This document shows positions 34,435 through 54,598 of a stretch of DNA of 64,000 nt, in pieces. The translations under genes and the position numbers were made by a program. The stretch covers positions 180,851 through 244,850 of IMG/VR virus record IMGVR_UViG_3300032331_003609; one strand, 5' to 3'. A model generated the notes under the pieces. The model searched no databases. It was not told the origin of the DNA and saw nothing but the letters and a program-made list of their open reading frames with translations. Numbering within the stretch: position 1 is the first letter of the stretch; each line of letters opens with the position of its first letter.

Positions 34435-35400
34435 ATGATTACTATACAGGAGATCTTAGGAACAGATTCGATTGCAGCTTCGAGACTGACCATTAATTCA
34501 AATTTTCTATTGGTTGAGAATGAAATCAACGATATAGAGAACATTTTTAATATTAATGTGGTTACGGGAGCCATGGATATTTCCCAGGCAACTAGCGGAC
34601 AGTTTAAAGCTAAGACAGTTTATGCAAACCAGGCAGCCTTTCCAGCATCAGGAACACCTACCGTAAATATTTATGGAACAGGTGCAAGTGCAGGTAATGC
34701 TTCATTTTCTGGAACTGTTTCAGCAACACAATTAATCCTGTCTGCAACAGGTTCATTCAATCAAATAAATGCATCGGGTCCAGCTGTTTTTGGCTCTACG
34801 GCTAGATATGATGGAGCAGTTACCTTTAACTCATCAGTTACTAACGGCCCAACTGGTTCTTATATTGAAAAGAATGCTACAGGAGCATCGGGTTCAACCA
34901 ATGCATTCATTTCACCTCTTAGCGGAGGCGGAGGGGGTATTACTGGTACTTTTAGCAATCCCTATGCTTTAGCTTTAAACGAGAGTGTAGTTTATGTTGA
35001 TGCTGGTTACGTTAGCTCAGCTGGAGGGGATTCTGGCTTTAATACCGGATTTTTCTTCTATGTTGCTACAGGAACTGCACCATCAGGAACCCCGCCTTCT
35101 ATTCCACAAGGATTTAGATTAACGTTAATCAATACTAGCGGAGCAGGTGGAAGAATCGCTACCGGTGTGACTGGACCAACAGGAAGCACATATTACACAG
35201 GATTTAATACATCAGCAAACGGCGGAGCATGGGCTTCTAAAGCAGTATTGGTTCCTTCATCACTTCCTTATAAAACATCTGTTACTCTTCAATGGGAAAA
35301 CAGAATAGGAAAAGGTGGTACATCACAAAACGGATCCTGGGTGGTTATATCTTCTTCAGGATACGTTGGAACAGATTTTAGCGCAGGAACTGGAGCATAA
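34435..35400 (+). CDS. Gly/Ser/Thr-rich fibre-like virion protein
   Basis: The N-terminus (I.I..I...D......INSNF) resembles a fibre anchor; the body is small-residue-rich and beta-like. Confidence 0.6.
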   Translation: MITIQEILGTDSIAASRLTINSNFLLVENEINDIENIFNINVVTGAMDISQATSGQFKAKTVYANQAAFPASGTPTVNIYGTGASAGNASFSGTVSATQLILSATGSFNQINASGPAVFGSTARYDGAVTFNSSVTNGPTGSYIEKNATGASGSTNAFISPLSGGGGGITGTFSNPYALALNESVVYVDAGYVSSAGGDSGFNTGFFFYVATGTAPSGTPPSIPQGFRLTLINTSGAGGRIATGVTGPTGSTYYTGFNTSANGGAWASKAVLVPSSLPYKTSVTLQWENRIGKGGTSQNGSWVVISSSGYVGTDFSAGTGA

Positions 35401-46889: not shown

Positions 46890-49088
46890 ATGCCGAAAAT
46901 AAACATATTAAATATTCTTGCTGGGGATCAACAAGCAATACTTGTAGACAAAGTAAACTACAATTTTGACCAGATTTTAACAGCGGGCGGCGGACCACAG
47001 GGACCTCAGGGCATTAGAGGTGCTACCGGACCTATAGGGCCGCAAGGAATACAGGGTCCAACCGGACCACAGGGATTAAAAGGATCAAGATGGTATGTTC
47101 AGGTAACCGCTCCAACATCTGAAAATATTTTTCATACACCCTGGGGAGAGCCTGAACTTGGAGATTATTGGTTAGCAGGAGCAGATGATGCTAATCCATA
47201 TGGAATTTATGTTTATAATGAAACTGTACCAGGAGCTTTAAATTGGGAGTACTCTGGAGTTTTCTTTGCTAATACATCAGCATTTACCCCGGTAGATGAC
47301 ATAAATCAGACGGATGAAAGAGCTTTAATACACGATACATTATTCAGTAATAGGTATTCTTTAGTCCTAAGTGATTACGGAGTTACCGGGTCAGAAACAG
47401 GATTTAAATATAGGGATTTTAATAAATTTGGAATTAATGGGGAAAGATCTAAGCTTAAAATAGCTACTGATTTTAATTCACCATTTTTATCCCTTTTATC
47501 TTTTGGTAGAGCAAACTTAGATGACGGAAATAGAGCAAACACAGCATATAGTTTAAATAGAAATCCTAGATTTAGATGGAAGAATTTAACAGGCAGTGAT
47601 TATCATATAGAATTCTTTTCTCCAACGGGTGATTATTATGTAAGCACTCCTAAATTTGTTATAGGGGGAACTTCTTCTAATTTTTCAGTAACAGGTTATA
47701 ATGCTACCGGCGACATGTTCCGCCTTACAACAAGTTCAACAGCTGCTGTAAATCCTAGCAAATATTTTTTTGGGTTTGACTCCGCTGGATATGTAACAAA
47801 AGGATTACCGTACAATCCAACAATAAGTGCAGGTATTCTTTCCTCTGATGCAAATAATTTAGATTATTACGAAGAGGGGGATTTAAAAGGAATACTTCAA
47901 TTAAAAACCTATTGCAATACTACAGAATGGAACGGAACGCCTGATTCTACATATAATAATGTAAAGGCAAGATATACGAGAATTGGTAATTTGGTTCATG
48001 TTGATTTTACAATTAAAATAGCAGGACTAGGAGCTACAGTTCCTCAGTATTTAGACAATGGTGGTACCTTATTTATTAAAGGATTTCCCTACGACCCTGA
48101 TTTCTCTGCCATTAAAGCAGGAGAAGACACTACAAGTATCACAAGACCAGCAATGCCTGTGATACCTATTAAGGCATCCATAGGAAATTCAACATTGAGG
48201 GATTATTCTGGTGCATTTGTTTATTACACAAATACAGGGGAATCAAGATTTATTCTTTATAATAATTCGGGGGGTTTATTTGATGTTAGTAGTTTACCTA
48301 CAGCAGCATCTTATTTATATGGAAGTTTCAGCTACACAACACAAAGTGCTACTAGAATTAGCACTATAGTTACACCTGCTGGATATTGTACAGGAACTTT
48401 ACCTGCACCAACACCAGCACCAACGCCAGCACCAACGCCAGCACCGACCCCAGCTCCTGATTACGATTTTGCTTGGGATTATGCTAATTATGTTGCAGGA
48501 CCAACACCAGCTCCAACACCTGCGCCTACGCCAGCTCCGACGCCAGCACCAACGCCAGCACCAACACCTGCGCCTACGCCAGCACCAACACCTGCGCCTA
48601 CGCCAGCACCAACACCTGCGCCTACGCCAGCACCAACACCTGCGCCTACGCCAGCACCAACGCCAGCACCAGCAAGCTGTAACATAAGTAATCCTAGCTA
48701 TGTGACAGTTAATACACCTACTGCTTATGGAACGATTTACATCTCAACGGATAGAAATATTACTTTATCAGCATTTGGGGGAGCAGCATTTGGAAGCCAT
48801 ACTAGCGCTAATATTAGCGTAACTGGATATAATGGAACAGCTACACCGTATCCAAGTTCTGCATATGTTTATGCAGGAAGTTATATTACTGCGGCTAACG
48901 ATCTTGCATTACCTGCTGGTTACTACAATTTCTACCTAACAAGTAGCTACCAAGGAAGTAATGGAAATAACGCTGGAATATCTTGTGGTACTGTCATAAC
49001 ATATACGCCAACACCTAGTCCAACTCCTAGCCCAGGAACTAGCGGAGGCGGCGGTGGAGGTGGAGGCGGAATGTCAGGAATAGGATAG
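46890..49088 (+). CDS. Tail fibre-like protein with collagen repeat, PAPT repeats and C-terminal poly-Gly
   Basis: N-terminal anchor, about 10 Gly-X-Y triplets, the LDYYEEG fibre motif, PAPT tracts and a terminal SG8MSGIG. Confidence 0.75.
46992..47081 (+). repeat. Collagen-like Gly-X-Y repeat (about 10 triplets)
   Basis: [30 protein letters not shown]. Confidence 0.9.
48402..48673 (+). repeat. PAPT tetrapeptide tandem repeats in two blocks (48402-48458 and 48501-48673)
   Basis: 12-nt period, with four exact 24-nt units ccagcaccaacacctgcgcctacg at 48555-48650. Confidence 0.95.
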
Positions 49089-49111
49089 AATTAAACTAAT
49101 AAATTAAAAAC

Positions 49112-49744
49112 ATGGATAGAGAGATAATATCGGGTGAAGATTTTTTATATCAAAGAGGGACAATTTCAACAGTCTACTCTTGGTATAGACCATCTTATGA
49201 CTATGTTAAAGATTATTTACAATACCTGAAAGACGAGACAACTGTTTTTGATGAATTTGAAATTTATTTAGCAGGAGGTATACTATACGATTTTGATAGC
49301 ACATGGGACGTTGATATATTTCTAGTAGGTGGTTTGGAAAGCGATGCAAAGATAGAAGAGCAATTAAATCTTATGACAGACATTGCATTGAATAAATTTT
49401 TCATGCTAGTAGATATAGCATGGATGGAAAGAAGACCTTCGAATATTACTTATTCGCAAATGGAAGAAAATAATTTTCTTCAAGAGGATATAGCATATAA
49501 AAAGATAGGGCATTTTAAAAAGAAAATGGGGACAGAATCCTGGGAATACAATATGAAAGATAATCCTGGTGTTGAACCTTTGAGCGAATACTTAATTAAA
49601 AGCAGTTTTGGTGGATTCAAACACACTGACAAAATGATAGACAAGGTTAGGAATCATCCTAAGCAAAATGTGATAACCACATTTAGTGCGGAAGAATTTC
49701 TATTGAATGATAGAAATTATTTTTTAAGTAATACTAATAGATAA
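49112..49744 (+). CDS. Pol-beta superfamily nucleotidyltransferase-like protein
   Basis: [21 protein letters not shown] fits hG[GS]x(9-13)DhDh, and a third Asp lies in MLVDIAW. Confidence 0.7.
49736..49744 (+). promoter_or_regulatory. Putative late promoter variant AATAGATAA
   Basis: Motif variant overlapping the NTase stop, 8 nt upstream of 49753. Confidence 0.4.
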
Positions 49745-49752
49745 GATATAAA

Positions 49753-51093
49753 ATGGCAAGTGTAAATATAAAATTCTCATCAGCAGGAAACGTTACGAGT
49801 CAATCGTATGAGATATCTGCAAGCGCAACAGAAAATGGGAGTTATAGTGTAATTAGTACTATATCAAGAGCAACACTTCTTGCCGGAACTTATATTACTG
49901 TTCCAGATGATTCTACGTGGATTAAAGGCGATAATGTTACAGTGGGAGCACCAGCTGGTATATCCCACAAAATACAAATATCGGGTCTTCCAGCACCAAC
50001 GCCAGCACCAACACCAGCACCAACACCTGCGCCTACGCCAGCTCCAACACCTGCGCCTACACCAGCACCAACACCAGCACCAACACCTGCTCCAACACCT
50101 GAGCCTACGCCAGCACCAACACCTGCTCCAACACCTGAGCCTACGCCAGCACCAACGCCAGCACCAACACCAGCACCAACACCAGCACCAACGCCAGCAC
50201 CAAATTACGGAGGAACAGTTTATGTAGTTAACACCAATTCGGGAACTGCAGCTGATGCTTGTAACGTATCTGGATTATACATTAGTTTAGGAGTTACTGG
50301 TAATGCAACAACGTTCTGTGCATCTACAATTTTCACGTCAACCACATGGCTATCACAGTTTACGAGCGAAAATTATTATATTTCTGATGCTACAGGGGGT
50401 TCAGGTTATATGACGGTTTATCATGCATCTGGTGATAATTTTGCAACAGTAACCAGCGGAGGTTGTACAGCATGCCCAGGAGCACCAACACCTGCACCAA
50501 CGCCAGCACCAACACCTGCACCAACGCCAGCACCAACACCAACACCAGGTCCTAGTGGCGGAGGCGGAGGAGGCGGATGTCTAGTCTATGGAACACTGAT
50601 TAGTATGGCAGACGGATCATACAAACCTGTTGAAGAAATAGTAATAGGCGATCTTATTAAAACTGTATCAATAGACGGATTGGATAGCAGCGACGAAGAT
50701 GCATGGAAGGTATACACATCTACATCATTCTCTTCAACCCCTATGATATCTACAGTAATGGCTATAATGGATGATAATTGGATCGAATACTATACGATTA
50801 ATGAATCTTTAAATATCACATTTGAACACCCTGTATTTGTTAAGAGAGACATTGATTATCTATTTACTAGAGTAGTTGATCTAATGCTAGGAGACTTTAT
50901 CCTAGATGAGACCGGAAATTGGGTAGAAGTAACCACGATAGATAAAATAGAATTAAACGTTCAAACCATTAATATAAACGTTGAAGATAGCGATCTTTAT
51001 TTCGCTAATGGATTACTAGTTCACAATCTAAATAACGTAGATAAATCTCCTTCAGGGGGAGCGGGAGGAGGACAACCCCCATTTAATCTATAA
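49753..51093 (+). CDS. PAPT-repeat virion protein with poly-Gly linker and C-terminal Hint (intein-like) domain
   Basis: Hint spans 50578-51027. It has N1 [25 protein letters not shown], block B TFEHP and C-terminal [15 protein letters not shown]. The +1 residue is Leu. Confidence 0.88.
49990..50202 (+). repeat. PAPT/PEPT tandem repeats (about 18 units); a shorter block follows at about 50481-50546
   Basis: 12-nt period. Contains the same 24-nt unit as the upstream gene, at 50014-50037. Confidence 0.95.
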
Positions 51094-51096
51094 TAT

Positions 51097-51384
51097 ATGA
51101 AGTTAACAAAAACTGAAATATCACAGATAGGATCGATAATGAATAGTTATCGATCCATCCATGAAAGCCTAAATTTTTACGAAAAGAATTTGGTCCTAAT
51201 GGAGAAAGGAAATATAGAAAAATCCGGGGATGAAATAACATCTCTTGGAATAAAAATAAAAGATAGCATATCAAAACTCCAACAGGAACGAGCTAAGGAA
51301 AAAGATTTCTTTGGTTTTCTAGAACAGAAATACGGACCTGGACAATTTGATACAGAAACTTTTGAATATAAAACAACAAAATGA
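51097..51384 (+). CDS. Hypothetical coiled-coil protein
   Basis: 95-aa ORF with a helical pattern; overlaps the next gene by ATGA. Confidence 0.6.
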   Translation: MKLTKTEISQIGSIMNSYRSIHESLNFYEKNLVLMEKGNIEKSGDEITSLGIKIKDSISKLQQERAKEKDFFGFLEQKYGPGQFDTETFEYKTTK

Positions 51385-52124
51385 AACAAGTAGAAAAACA
51401 GGTAGAAGTTGTAAGGGAGTTTAAAAACAATAATAAGAAGTTACTTATAGTAGCAGGACTTATAATATTGGCATTTTTAATCTACGGAACATTTAACAAC
51501 AGCTACCATGCTAAAGAGATAAAAGCACTTGAAACTGAGATTGGTGTGGTTCAAAAAAAGTTTGATGCAGCAATAGAGGAAAAAGAAAAATTAAAGGATT
51601 CTTCTTTAATCTATGAAACAATGGCTGAACAAGCAGGTGCTGAGGCCGACGTATTTAGAACAAAAGCAGAAAAGGAAAAAAAGGCTAAGGAACTGGCATT
51701 ATCAGCGTTGCAAAATTTACCTAAAGATGTAATTGATACATTCTTTGTTAAAAGGTATGTAGATGTTCCTAAATCGGATATTGGATTAGAATTGGACAAG
51801 AATGTCGGAAATGCAATAGTGATAGAATTGGTTGAAAAAGATCATTTAGTTGGTCAATTAGCAACACAAGAGAACCTAACAACCACCCTTACCACACAGG
51901 TAAACACCCTACAAACTTCATTAGGTTTCTCTAAATTGGCTCTTGTTAGTGCAGATTCAGCAATTGTAGCTAGATCAAAGCAATTTGAATTACAACAACA
52001 AGTAAGTGACTTATTAAAGCAAGACTTAAAAACGGCTAAGAAAAAAGCTTTTTGGAACAAACTTAAAGGAACTGCAGTAGGTATTGTTGTAGGCTTTACC
52101 GTTGGTATTATTGCAGTAAAGTAA
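51381..52124 (+). CDS. Membrane-anchored coiled-coil protein (spanin-like candidate)
   Basis: N-terminal TM segment KLLIVAGLIILAFLIYGTF, a long coiled coil, and a C-terminal hydrophobic GTAVGIVVGFTVGIIAV. Confidence 0.5.
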   Translation: MKQVEKQVEVVREFKNNNKKLLIVAGLIILAFLIYGTFNNSYHAKEIKALETEIGVVQKKFDAAIEEKEKLKDSSLIYETMAEQAGAEADVFRTKAEKEKKAKELALSALQNLPKDVIDTFFVKRYVDVPKSDIGLELDKNVGNAIVIELVEKDHLVGQLATQENLTTTLTTQVNTLQTSLGFSKLALVSADSAIVARSKQFELQQQVSDLLKQDLKTAKKKAFWNKLKGTAVGIVVGFTVGIIAVK

Positions 52125-52174: not shown

Positions 52175-54598
52175 ATGTCAAGCTTCACCTATACCAGTAA
52201 ATTTTTCAGTCTTGCTCCATATTTACTTATGGAGTACAGATATGGTACACAGCCTAATCCTGAGAATCATTCAGTGTTATATGGCCTTAATGCCATCGGT
52301 TTTGAAAAGATGTCCAATGGATATTTCAATGGGACAGTGCAAATTACCAATAGAAATCAAGACACTGAAGCAACTGGTAATGTAAGAGATAGAAGTTCTG
52401 TACAAACATCACAAAACACGTTTGTTAGATTAGATATTGATCGTTTAGAACAATATCTGGATTATGACGACAAGCTAACAGATATTAGCAATCTTCCTAT
52501 TGTATTTGAAAACAATATTAATGTCTATTATGACACCGTAAGATACCACTTTTTAAGTGGATATAATTTCGGAACAAAGGATGGCGCTATCATGCAAATC
52601 CAATTTCAGGAAAGAAACGGTAAGAAAGCTACTATTTCTCAAATAACATATGAGAAGGGGGATATAAATATTACAACACCTAACCCTAGTCCAATTTATT
52701 TTAATGCTGGAATATATGATCATTTTATAGAAGTTAAGATTCCTTCTTATGCTTCTATTACATATGACTATGACACCCAAGCAGTAAATGGATTAGCTGA
52801 TCAAACTATTGCATCTAAGATTAGTTCCGATGGACAAGGATTTATAAGAAATCAACCATTTAATATTTCTCTTTATGAGATAGAATCCACACAAAGTATT
52901 AATGGGTTTTACTATTATCAAACTGCTTTAAATACGATAGCAACAATTACTCCTTCCGATGAGTATGCAGATCTTGCAGGTGTTATAACTGAAAATACAG
53001 ATTTTGATTATTTTGAATATTATCCTTCTTGGCAAGGAAATTTTATAGAGGATTTCATTTATGCTGAAAGCTCTTTAGGAAACATCTATTATATTATTCA
53101 TGACATTGAACTAATGGAACAAATAGGTCTAAGAAGAGTTTCCACCCAAAAGATTCAATTGCTTCAAGATAAAGATTTTAATGGTCCTTATCTTTACAGA
53201 CCTGTTGTTATGAATCCTAAGGCAACTAGCTTCTCAATTAATTATTCAATGAGACTAGTTAATAAGAATAGTAACGTTTCTATACTAAGAGTATCAACAG
53301 TAACAAGTACTGAGGTTGACAAATACGGACCAGGCGTTAAAAGAATAAATTTATTACATCAGCCATATCCACAAAAGGTTTACAATAAGGTAGTTGAGCC
53401 GGTTGTTTCTAAGGCATACACATTGAATGTAAATCCAATAGAAAGAGTTATTACTAAATATGTTCCAGCTTTCTTTGAGAGAGAAAATGTAAATATATCA
53501 GAAGAAGATTTAACCATAGACAATCTTGGGGGTTTAACACAATCAGCAACTGTTGATGCTTCAATAGCATTTGGACAAGGAAAATCTAAGATTGTAATTA
53601 ATCCTTATGATAACTATTATAAGTTTAGGGTTTTTGTAAAAAATGACGGGAAAGAAAATACCTTATTAGATCTTGGATCTAATTCAGATTTTTATTTAGT
53701 ATTTGAAGGTGGAGATAACAAAACAGTAAAAATATCTAGTTTAATAAATAGCACATTCCAGAATCCTAGTAAAGGAGAATTGGTATTTAGAGTTGTTGAA
53801 TCAGATTCTAAAAAAGTAACAGCATTTATGGAAAGAGATTTTCATATAGTTGCAAGAACTAATAATGGAATAGAAACATCGATCTATCATGGATATTGGA
53901 TTTTACCTAGTGAAAGAGATCAGAAGCCTGTTGCGGTAACCCCGGCAACACCAGCTCCTATGCCTGCACCTGTAGTGATTTCACCAGTTCAAGCAACAGC
54001 AGCACCTGCGCCAATGCAAGTTGCAACCCCAACAGCAACGCCTGTTCCTGCTGCTATAGAAACACCTGCACCAACACCTTCTACACCAACGGTTGATATA
54101 ATACCGCAACAGCCTAAAGAATACTTTGACATTAAAACTGATCCTGTGATACTAAATGTTGAACCGGCAGTTATGACAAAAGTAGTTGTTGAAGAACCAG
54201 TTATTGTTAAGAAGATACCTATTAAGGCAGACATTGACACGCTAGCAAACCTAATCAAGATGGATGAAAATGCGGGTAAATCGGTTCCTGAAGTTTGTGA
54301 TTACTATACGGTTCCTGGAAATCCTGGAAATCTTCTTTATGAAGGTATCACAGTCAGATTCTTTTTAAATGCTGTTAGATTAGTCCATCCAGATACATTC
54401 GGTAGAAGAAGCGATGAATTTGCAATGTATGCAAATTACCTAGGTGAAATTTACAATCCATATGAGAATCAGAAATATCCATCAGGTGGTGGAGGTGGAG
54501 CTGGTGGTGGGTATATTGGAGGCGGGGGAGTAGGGTACAACATCTACGACAAGATACAAGACAAAAGTGAAACGATGGGTCAAACCTTCTTTCTATAA
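52175..54598 (+). CDS. Putative virion structural protein with Pro/Ala/Thr-rich linker and Gly-rich tail
   Basis: 807 aa with a beta-rich N-terminus, a TPATPAPMPAP...PAPTPSTP linker and a C-terminal PSGGGGGAGGGYIGGGG. Confidence 0.6.
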   Translation: MSSFTYTSKFFSLAPYLLMEYRYGTQPNPENHSVLYGLNAIGFEKMSNGYFNGTVQITNRNQDTEATGNVRDRSSVQTSQNTFVRLDIDRLEQYLDYDDKLTDISNLPIVFENNINVYYDTVRYHFLSGYNFGTKDGAIMQIQFQERNGKKATISQITYEKGDINITTPNPSPIYFNAGIYDHFIEVKIPSYASITYDYDTQAVNGLADQTIASKISSDGQGFIRNQPFNISLYEIESTQSINGFYYYQTALNTIATITPSDEYADLAGVITENTDFDYFEYYPSWQGNFIEDFIYAESSLGNIYYIIHDIELMEQIGLRRVSTQKIQLLQDKDFNGPYLYRPVVMNPKATSFSINYSMRLVNKNSNVSILRVSTVTSTEVDKYGPGVKRINLLHQPYPQKVYNKVVEPVVSKAYTLNVNPIERVITKYVPAFFERENVNISEEDLTIDNLGGLTQSATVDASIAFGQGKSKIVINPYDNYYKFRVFVKNDGKENTLLDLGSNSDFYLVFEGGDNKTVKISSLINSTFQNPSKGELVFRVVESDSKKVTAFMERDFHIVARTNNGIETSIYHGYWILPSERDQKPVAVTPATPAPMPAPVVISPVQATAAPAPMQVATPTATPVPAAIETPAPTPSTPTVDIIPQQPKEYFDIKTDPVILNVEPAVMTKVVVEEPVIVKKIPIKADIDTLANLIKMDENAGKSVPEVCDYYTVPGNPGNLLYEGITVRFFLNAVRLVHPDTFGRRSDEFAMYANYLGEIYNPYENQKYPSGGGGGAGGGYIGGGGVGYNIYDKIQDKSETMGQTFFL

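Follow-up and report, generated by a model that had tools for sequence, protein, structure and literature searches.

What does a Hint domain accomplish when it stands at the very end of a phage fiber-like protein, directly behind a run of glycines? The question is raised by three adjacent open reading frames (ORFs) in a 64,000-nt stretch of viral DNA (IMG/VR record IMGVR_UViG_3300032331_003609, positions 180,851 to 244,850), referred to here as the window. An initial annotation of this DNA described ORF1 and ORF3 as paired fiber proteins with PAPT repeats and poly-Gly ends, and ORF2, encoded between them, as a nucleotidyltransferase (NTase). The Hint domain of ORF3 was proposed to activate the poly-Gly end for attachment to another molecule, with ORF2 supplying or modifying the acceptor. 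The coordinates given for all three ORFs and their features proved exact. On balance, we think it probable that ORF3 is a modular fiber or decoration protein whose last 171 residues form a self-removing cassette, resolved in cis by an amine of the cassette's own flank. The parts of ORF3 are listed below, in window coordinates and amino acids (aa).

49753–51093 (+): ORF3, 446 aa, intact
49753–50577 (+): N-extein of ORF3
aa 1–79 (+): N-domain
49990–50202 (+): PAPT array of 71 aa (aa 80–150)
about 50203–50481 (+): middle four-Cys domain (C170, C189, C238, C241)
50482–50547 (+): PT linker (aa 244–265), followed by GPS
50557–50577 (+): G7 run (aa 269–275)
50578–51027 (+): Hint domain, Cys276 to Asn425, 150 aa, the only Hint domain in the window
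50578–50580 (+): Cys1 of the Hint domain, Cys276
50818–50829 (+): block B of the Hint domain, TFEH (T356/H359)
51022–51027 (+): terminal His424-Asn425 of the Hint domain
51028–51093 (+): C-flank (micro C-extein) of 21 aa from Leu426, with NNVD-K431, a Gly/Pro-rich end and the stop
51043–51045 (+): Lys431 (position +6), candidate cis nucleophile

The Hint domain of ORF3

Judged from its sequence and predicted fold, the C-terminal domain of ORF3 is a genuine Hint domain of the bacterial intein-like (BIL) kind with its catalytic residues intact. An AlphaFold2 (AF2) model, based on an alignment with 22 relatives, had a predicted local distance difference test score (pLDDT) of 85 and a predicted template-modeling score (pTM) of 0.79. 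In Foldseek searches against the PDB, the best matches of this model were BIL2 (6y75/6tmm; E 5e-11, TM 0.81) and a second BIL domain (2lwy; TM 0.83). BIL structures outranked inteins and Hedgehog, with Hedgehog (1at0) at rank 19. There were 62 PDB matches at E ≤ 1e-3, and among the 50 matches listed all were Hint domains. A phmmer search of the PDB also placed BIL2 of the Tetrahymena BUBL1 locus and the Clostridium thermocellum BIL domain on top. Cys1, the Thr and His of block B, and the terminal His-Asn were invariant in alignments at 29–91% identity, which indicates that both junction chemistries are under selection. These invariant residues, together with the BIL fold, bear out the description of the domain as a Hint with Cys1, TxxH, terminal His-Asn and Leu at +1. 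Because this +1 residue, Leu426, is non-nucleophilic, canonical splicing is excluded, as had been argued from the lack of a +1 nucleophile; thioester chemistry at the poly-Gly C terminus would still be expected.

In all the features that could be tested, the domain agrees with A-type BIL domains (Amitai 2003; Dassa 2004; C. thermocellum 2lwy). Common to both are the Hint fold, Cys1 and TxxH, a His-Asn at the C-terminal end, and the absence of Cys, Ser or Thr from +1. The ORF3 domain lies, as they do, in a variable region of a non-conserved, surface-type protein, and it contains no homing endonuclease. Even with no +1 nucleophile, A-type BIL domains undergo cleavage and in some cases splicing (PMC5874633, PMC7765530), and for ORF3 too one would predict self-cleavage at both the N- and C-terminal junctions, with nucleophile-free ligation possible. 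The ORF3 family differs from the A-type domains in its position at the very C terminus of phage fiber proteins, with a flank of only 1–20 aa, and in its frequent poly-Gly N-flank and near-universal C-flank Lys.

The best match in both sequence and structure is BUBL BIL2 of Tetrahymena thermophila (6y75/6tmm), at an identity of only 25%. In that system, the C terminus of the N-extein is reportedly joined to the ε-amine of a Lys, forming an isopeptide bond without ATP (PMC8616854). The Lys-containing C-flank of ORF3 fits such Lys-transfer chemistry. Yet the two systems come from a phage and a ciliate, respectively, and their exteins are unlike. Those of BUBL are ubiquitin-like, whereas ORF3 has a PAPT/Cys-domain fiber as its N-extein, a short peptide as its C-extein, and no ubiquitin-family match in Pfam.

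Other assignments were tried and rejected. A canonical intein does not fit a domain with Leu at +1 and only 21 aa after it, in a mosaic fiber protein. The Hog domain of Hedgehog (1at0) resembles the ORF3 domain in its Gly-Cys junction, its thioester formation and its C-terminal position in the precursor. But ORF3 has no sterol-recognition region, only a 21-aa Gly/Pro tail, and its invariant His-Asn is unused in Hedgehog; the structural match is also weaker than that to BIL domains. The closest Pfam profile to the family is pretoxin Hint (PT-HINT, PF07591), which ranks first in Pfam for 19 of 22 relatives. A toxin cassette of this type was rejected on the basis of a sub-threshold score for the window domain and the lack of any toxin or other domain downstream. 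The Peptidase_S74 chaperone of tail spikes and fibers is alike in function only: it is C-terminal, cleaves itself and is discarded from the mature fiber, but it shares neither fold nor chemistry with the ORF3 domain, and a sequence match was absent.

Flanks and relatives of the Hint domain

The relatives of the Hint domain were collected in several ways. A word-indexed search gave 42 clusters. An unindexed HMMER scan with the segment from Cys276 to the end gave 2,205 clusters (50% identity) at E ≤ 1e-3, of which 468 reached E ≤ 1e-10. In IMG/VR, the cassette was found on 122 viral contigs. By tblastn, it was C-terminal in proteins annotated as 'virion structural', 'tail' or 'large intein domain', and its carriers include the cultured Erwinia jumbo phages Alexandra (gp112) and Y3 as well as phage NCTB (BN7874_132; SGGGGGG/C...HN/A, with slashes at the junctions). 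Most relatives have the domain at the extreme C terminus of phage fiber-like proteins. Hence the family is large, mostly phage-borne and almost always C-terminal.

For statistics on the flanks, we used 108 representatives (50% identity) with a terminal Hint domain, retrieved with a query from which the Gly run was left out. Their N-exteins are mutually unrelated and measure 12–3,263 aa, and their C-flanks have a median length of 8 aa. Position 1 of the domain is Cys in 105 cases and Ser in 3. The +1 residue is mostly Ala, Val, Lys, Ile or Leu; it is Ser or Thr in 11/108 and never Cys. On the N-terminal side, the –1 residue is Gly in 53/108, and at least three Gly occupy positions –6 to –1 in 48/108, compared to P = 0.013 per protein from each protein's own composition. 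The junction of Gly run and Hint domain, to which the initial annotation had drawn attention, is thus non-random. A Gly run before Cys1 is frequent (about half of the proteins) and not family-defining.

On the C-terminal side, 104 of the 108 representatives have a Lys in the flank. Only 21–36 would be expected from the composition of the N-extein or the Hint domain. Random N-extein windows of the same length gave a mean of 14.9 and never exceeded 25 in 1,000 draws, and the Lys frequency of the tails themselves would still predict only ∼60/108. Arg makes up 1.5% of tail residues, compared to 10.8% for Lys; inside the Hint domain, the ratio of Lys to Arg is 2:1. The first flank Lys falls at +1 to +8, and the last is followed by three or fewer residues in 70/104 representatives. 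Across 14 different tails in one marine orthologous family of ∼2,100-aa proteins, all other positions have diverged, and each tail retains a single Lys (for example VGGNQKQ, VILDEEKP, ASQIKE and VSAPTEKF). The close clade of ORF3 keeps VDK or VEK at the position of Lys431. Where Hint domains occur in tandem, the +1 residue is Lys in 42/80 internal domains, and the Gly-rich C termini of Hint-less relatives contain Lys in 0/9 cases. A requirement for Lys specifically, beside a junction predicted to form a thioester, is most simply explained if the Lys acts as a nucleophile. Because this residue is nearly universal in the domain's own short flank, we read the acceptor as one acting in cis.

The Hint domain is also stably retained. 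In the marine family of ∼2,100-aa proteins, all complete orthologues keep it, at N-extein identities of 63–100%. This argues for a function rather than selfish insertion.

Two groups of relatives have unusual junctions. In L102, L103 and L115, members of the marine ∼2,100-aa family, Ser1 replaces Cys1, the N-flank is acidic (D/E-rich) rather than Gly-rich, and Lys is at +1 (HN/KEIT). The metagenomic proteins P0060, P0084, P0095, P0100, P0188, P0202 and P0205 contain 3–9 tandem Hint domains separated only by linkers of the form HN/K(G)0–4/C. These arrays may represent a relay or polymerizing splicing system; if all of the domains fire, the 'exteins' would be mere K-G-G peptides.

Comparison of close relatives showed that ORF3 is assembled from exchangeable parts. 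Four ORF3 orthologues have a Hint domain (window, L007, P0002 and L097) and two do not (L009 and P0207). The window and L097 share one type of middle Cys domain, and L007, P0002, L009 and P0207 have another; despite this exchange, the flanking N-domain and Hint domain are 75–95% identical. In L009 and P0207, a different C-terminal module takes the place of the Hint domain, and these orthologues differ by the whole preceding module rather than by a precise deletion. The idea that the modules are swappable thus stood, both for the C-terminal module and for the Cys domain in the middle. When further Hint-less orthologues were sought with the ORF3 N-domain, two proteins only were returned, and a protein-atlas search with the ORF3 N-extein returned only sub-threshold leads (phage 'hypothetical' and Ig-like proteins).

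The PAPT arrays of ORF1 and ORF3 are true tandem repeats at the DNA level, with a period of 12/24. In the window (49990–50547) and in L007, L009, L097, P0002 and P0207, PAPT-coding repeats flank the exchanged ORF3 module. From their placement, these repeats look like recombination joints.

Processing at the poly-Gly junction

We propose that the cassette combines a micro C-extein with an A-type-BIL-like Hint domain. After folding, an N-S acyl shift would convert the peptide bond between Gly275 and Cys276 to a thioester, with the participation of Cys1, Thr356 and His359. The acyl group would then be captured in cis by an amine of the C-flank. The likeliest acceptor would be the ε-amine of Lys431, yielding an isopeptide as reported for BUBL BIL2. 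An alternative would be the α-amine of Leu426, freed by Asn cyclization, as in proposals for A-type BIL domains, and water would be the fallback. Cyclization of Asn425 would release the 150-aa Hint domain, which would be discarded, and the mature fiber would end in poly-Gly carrying a short peptide, or in free Gly. The poly-Gly run would provide a flexible, unhindered –1 region. Most economically, the cassette would serve as a C-terminal cap that can be removed, that governs folding or assembly, and that comes with its own quencher for the thioester.

Several points weigh against this proposal. Self-processing, the products formed and the part played by the Lys are inferences. In the AF2 model, the tail is disordered (pLDDT <50 from +4), and the geometry gives no support for Lys431 reaching Cys276. 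The tail of ORF3 extends 15 residues past its Lys, compared to at most three for most of the family, which hints at an extra role of the tail. The Lys could instead aid catalysis, dock the tail or serve as a target for something else, and a branched C-terminal peptide would bring no obvious benefit to the fiber. As the orthologues L009 and P0207 do without it, the Hint domain is dispensable for this type of fiber. Finally, the window domain scores 21.4–24.0 bits with PT-HINT, below the gathering cut-off of 27.7.

A simpler scheme, which we consider rather unlikely, makes the Hint domain a self-cleaving pro-domain: a removable module for folding, solubility or assembly timing, comparable in function to the S74 chaperone of tail spikes, whose thioester is hydrolyzed and whose Lys is catalytic or structural. 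The location of the domain at the fiber C terminus and its stable retention in an orthologous family are consistent with this. So too are the Hint-less relatives that end in poly-Gly plus a few residues, which suggest that a mature fiber can end in a bare Gly-rich stretch. Yet the scheme leaves unexplained why Asn cyclization (the invariant His-Asn) is kept with a C-flank of few residues, and why the flank requires Lys and not Arg; nor is there homology to the S74 chaperones in Pfam.

Capture in trans appears improbable. Here the acceptor of the poly-Gly thioester would be a glycan, a lipid, a second virion protein or an amine on the host surface, supplied or modified by ORF2. The thioester chemistry is the same as in the cis model, BUBL BIL2 reportedly conjugates its N-extein to other proteins too (PMC8616854), a flexible poly-Gly arm would suit intermolecular attack, and the Hint domain sits on fiber- or adhesin-like proteins. 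But the family's own Lys, 1–8 residues from the C-junction, places a cis acceptor at hand, leaving the ligation to a virion protein, glycan or lipid that had been envisaged for ORF3 unsupported. The invariant terminal His-Asn would be needless for a pure Hedgehog-type transfer. No partner gene is conserved: ORF2 is missing at 78/80 viral Hint loci and elsewhere present without a Hint gene. The diversity of the N-exteins also argues against one dedicated acceptor. We give just as little weight to a variant in which the thioester is a warhead for covalent coupling, captured in trans by a lysine or other amine of the virion or cell envelope, with the flank Lys merely a default quencher. If this variant were true, it would mean self-ligating, ATP-independent covalent attachment of fibers across thousands of phage proteins.

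Less probable still is a selfish or neutral intein-like insertion behind Gly runs that removes itself and brings the phage no benefit. The domain is indeed patchy among the ORF3 orthologues (four with, two without), and the Hint-less Gly-tailed ends resemble 'empty sites'. However, it is a 150-aa mini-domain with no homing endonuclease, the Hint-less orthologues lack the precise deletion, retention across the diverged marine family is 100%, and the location at the end of non-conserved proteins is unlike that of inteins. Release of the 21-aa Gly/Pro tail as a bioactive peptide, in the manner of pretoxin Hint domains, appears highly implausible: the relatives' affinity to PT-HINT recalls such effectors, but the window copy is under the PT-HINT threshold and the C-flanks, at 1–20 aa, are unconserved save for one Lys and carry no toxin domain.

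In the searchable full-text literature, we found no description of a C-terminal Hint domain on phage fibers or of the poly-Gly/Lys signature, an absence that is not proof of novelty. Literature on phage inteins consisted only of reports of inteins in terminase or ribonucleotide reductase, plus general BIL reviews. What appears to be new is the terminal Hint domain on phage fibers with its micro C-extein, the scale of the family, and the signatures of the two flanks, the Lys most of all. If the cis proposal is true, a very large, mostly phage-borne group of fiber or decoration proteins is matured by a BIL-type Hint domain, with a lysine in the micro C-extein replacing the canonical +1 Cys, Ser or Thr. 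Such maturation would amount to natural 'isopeptide splicing' or self-capping, for which the ciliate BUBL locus is the only case reported to date. Fiber assembly would gain a post-translational step that escapes annotation pipelines; the labels now given to genes with the cassette are 'large intein domain protein', 'virion structural protein' or 'hypothetical'. Such cassettes could supply protein engineering with compact, cofactor-free, Gly-tolerant ligation or cleavage modules. On a minimal reading, the fibers would shed a 150-aa C-terminal cap, which would be useful to know for jumbo-phage virion proteomics and fiber structures.

ORF1, ORF2 and the genomic setting

The two genes upstream of ORF3 are arranged as follows.

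46890–49088 (+): ORF1, 732 aa, intact
46992–47090 (+): GXY collagen-like repeat of ORF1 (aa 35–67)
48402–48458 and 48501–48674 (+): PAPT arrays of ORF1 (aa 505–523 and aa 538–595)
48678–48986 (+): Cys597–Cys699 domain of ORF1
49005–49034 (+): PT/PS linker of ORF1 (10 aa)
49044–49070 (+): G9 of the S-G9 end of ORF1, followed by MSGIG and the stop
49112–49744 (+): ORF2, 210 aa, intact

ORF1 has a large core between its GXY stretch and its PAPT arrays, and it has no Hint domain. Its matches to PHROG tail fibers are limited to the collagen stretch, and those in NCBIfam are to collagen-like adhesin stretches only. A protein-atlas search with the core gave nothing above threshold, only phage 'hypothetical' and Ig-like leads. 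The ORF1 homologues of L007, L009 and L097 end in G9–G11 plus 6–7 aa, with no Lys. The Gly run of ORF1 itself has nine residues rather than the seven or eight first counted. ORF1 and ORF3 do share a layout, as had been claimed, but this holds at the level of architecture: BLASTP detected no homology between their Cys-bracketed domains (E > 1). We regard ORF1 as a Gly-tailed fiber in its own right, without Hint chemistry.

ORF2 has a motif, hG[GS]...DxD...D, like that of Pol-beta nucleotidyltransferases (G55-G56 ... D66-x-D68 ... D101). In an alignment of ORF2 with 11 relatives (12 sequences, 33–90% identity), G55, G56, D66, D68 and D101 were invariant or nearly so. The Pfam family NTP_transf_2 matched 3/12 members, weakly (best E 0.046), and not the window protein. 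For ORF2 itself, no match was found in Pfam, PHROGs, NCBIfam, the PDB (phmmer and profile search) or phages (tblastn). Its neighbors in the protein atlas, which is based on a protein language model, include NTP_transf_2/Polbeta clusters; we treat these as leads only. The AF2 model of ORF2 was poor (pLDDT 54), too weak for Foldseek, whose matches were meaningless. The label comes from the motif, and ORF2 is only weakly indicated to be an NTase.

The surroundings of ORF2 point away from the Hint domain. Relatives preserve the order of genes (ORF1-type fiber, ORF2, Hint protein, and proteins of 95, 247 and ∼800 aa) as far as 55% ORF2 identity. The proposed neighborhood of NTase, PAPT and Hint genes was conserved in this nearest clade only: an ORF2-like gene lies within 6 kb of 2/80 viral poly-Gly-Hint loci, the two closest ones, and is missing from the other 78. 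NTase-like genes occur without a Hint gene in L009, L010, L011/L013, L014 and L095, and more distant ORF2 homologues (L010, L011/L013, L095/L096) have no Hint gene nearby. In the window, L007, L009, L010, L011/L013, L095/L096 and L097, the ORF2-like gene is always immediately downstream of a fiber-like gene with a Gly-rich tail, and this pairing is independent of a nearby Hint gene. The tails in question are G9–G11 plus 3–7 aa, ...SGGGSGGGY, ...GGYSGGGGMSSGGGFYQSFQ and ...GGSVGGSVGGGGGGSPS. Because Hint loci mostly lack ORF2 and ORF2 lineages always follow a Gly-tailed gene, ORF2 appears to be tied, if to anything, to ORF1-type fibers and not to the Hint domain. It may be a modifying enzyme with a Pol-beta fold, or an accessory or assembly factor for the fiber. 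Its position may resemble the usual order of a fiber gene followed by a chaperone gene. The idea of an NTase acting with the Hint domain should be dropped, or redirected to Gly-tailed fibers of the ORF1 type.

The window belongs to a viral contig of 244,850 bp (L008/L015, 100% identity). Several giant proteins are encoded upstream of the locus, as is a gp6-like baseplate wedge protein. On the downstream side are genes for a RuvC-like resolvase, a gp32-like single-stranded DNA-binding protein, a primase, UvsY and a helicase. Based on these baseplate and replication-type neighbors, the locus is the end of the baseplate/tail-fiber module of a T4-like jumbo myovirus. The G+C content of the source phage is ∼33%. 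Among GenBank phages there was no near-identical DNA or close relative, and elsewhere in the window there was no second copy of the Hint or NTase gene.

Directly after the Hint gene, all close relatives have a conserved pair of ORFs, which in the window encode 95 aa (51097–51384) and 247 aa (51381–52124). The 247-aa product has hydrophobic segments at its N and C termini, a coiled coil and a weak match to Rz-like spanins. Next is an 807-aa ORF (52175–54598), also conserved in L007, L009 and L004, with no match in Pfam, PHROGs or NCBIfam. With a linker rich in Pro and Ala and a C-terminal region rich in Gly (PSGGGGGAGGGYIGGGGVGY...), its product is the third Gly-tailed fiber-like protein of the module. 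In the fiber/baseplate region, a 321-aa ORF (34435–35400) without a family match contains an internal G5 run (34924–34938).

The PAPT arrays also confound gene calling. ORFs at 48488–48685 (–), 48469–48687 (+) and 49880–50227 (+) lie over the arrays and are repeat artefacts, encoding for example GAGV or HQRQ repeats. Such out-of-frame or antisense ORFs across PAPT arrays concern L004 and L097 too. In public gene calls, ORF3 homologues are mis-called at these arrays, with P0001 starting at about residue 140 and P0059 and L097 split.

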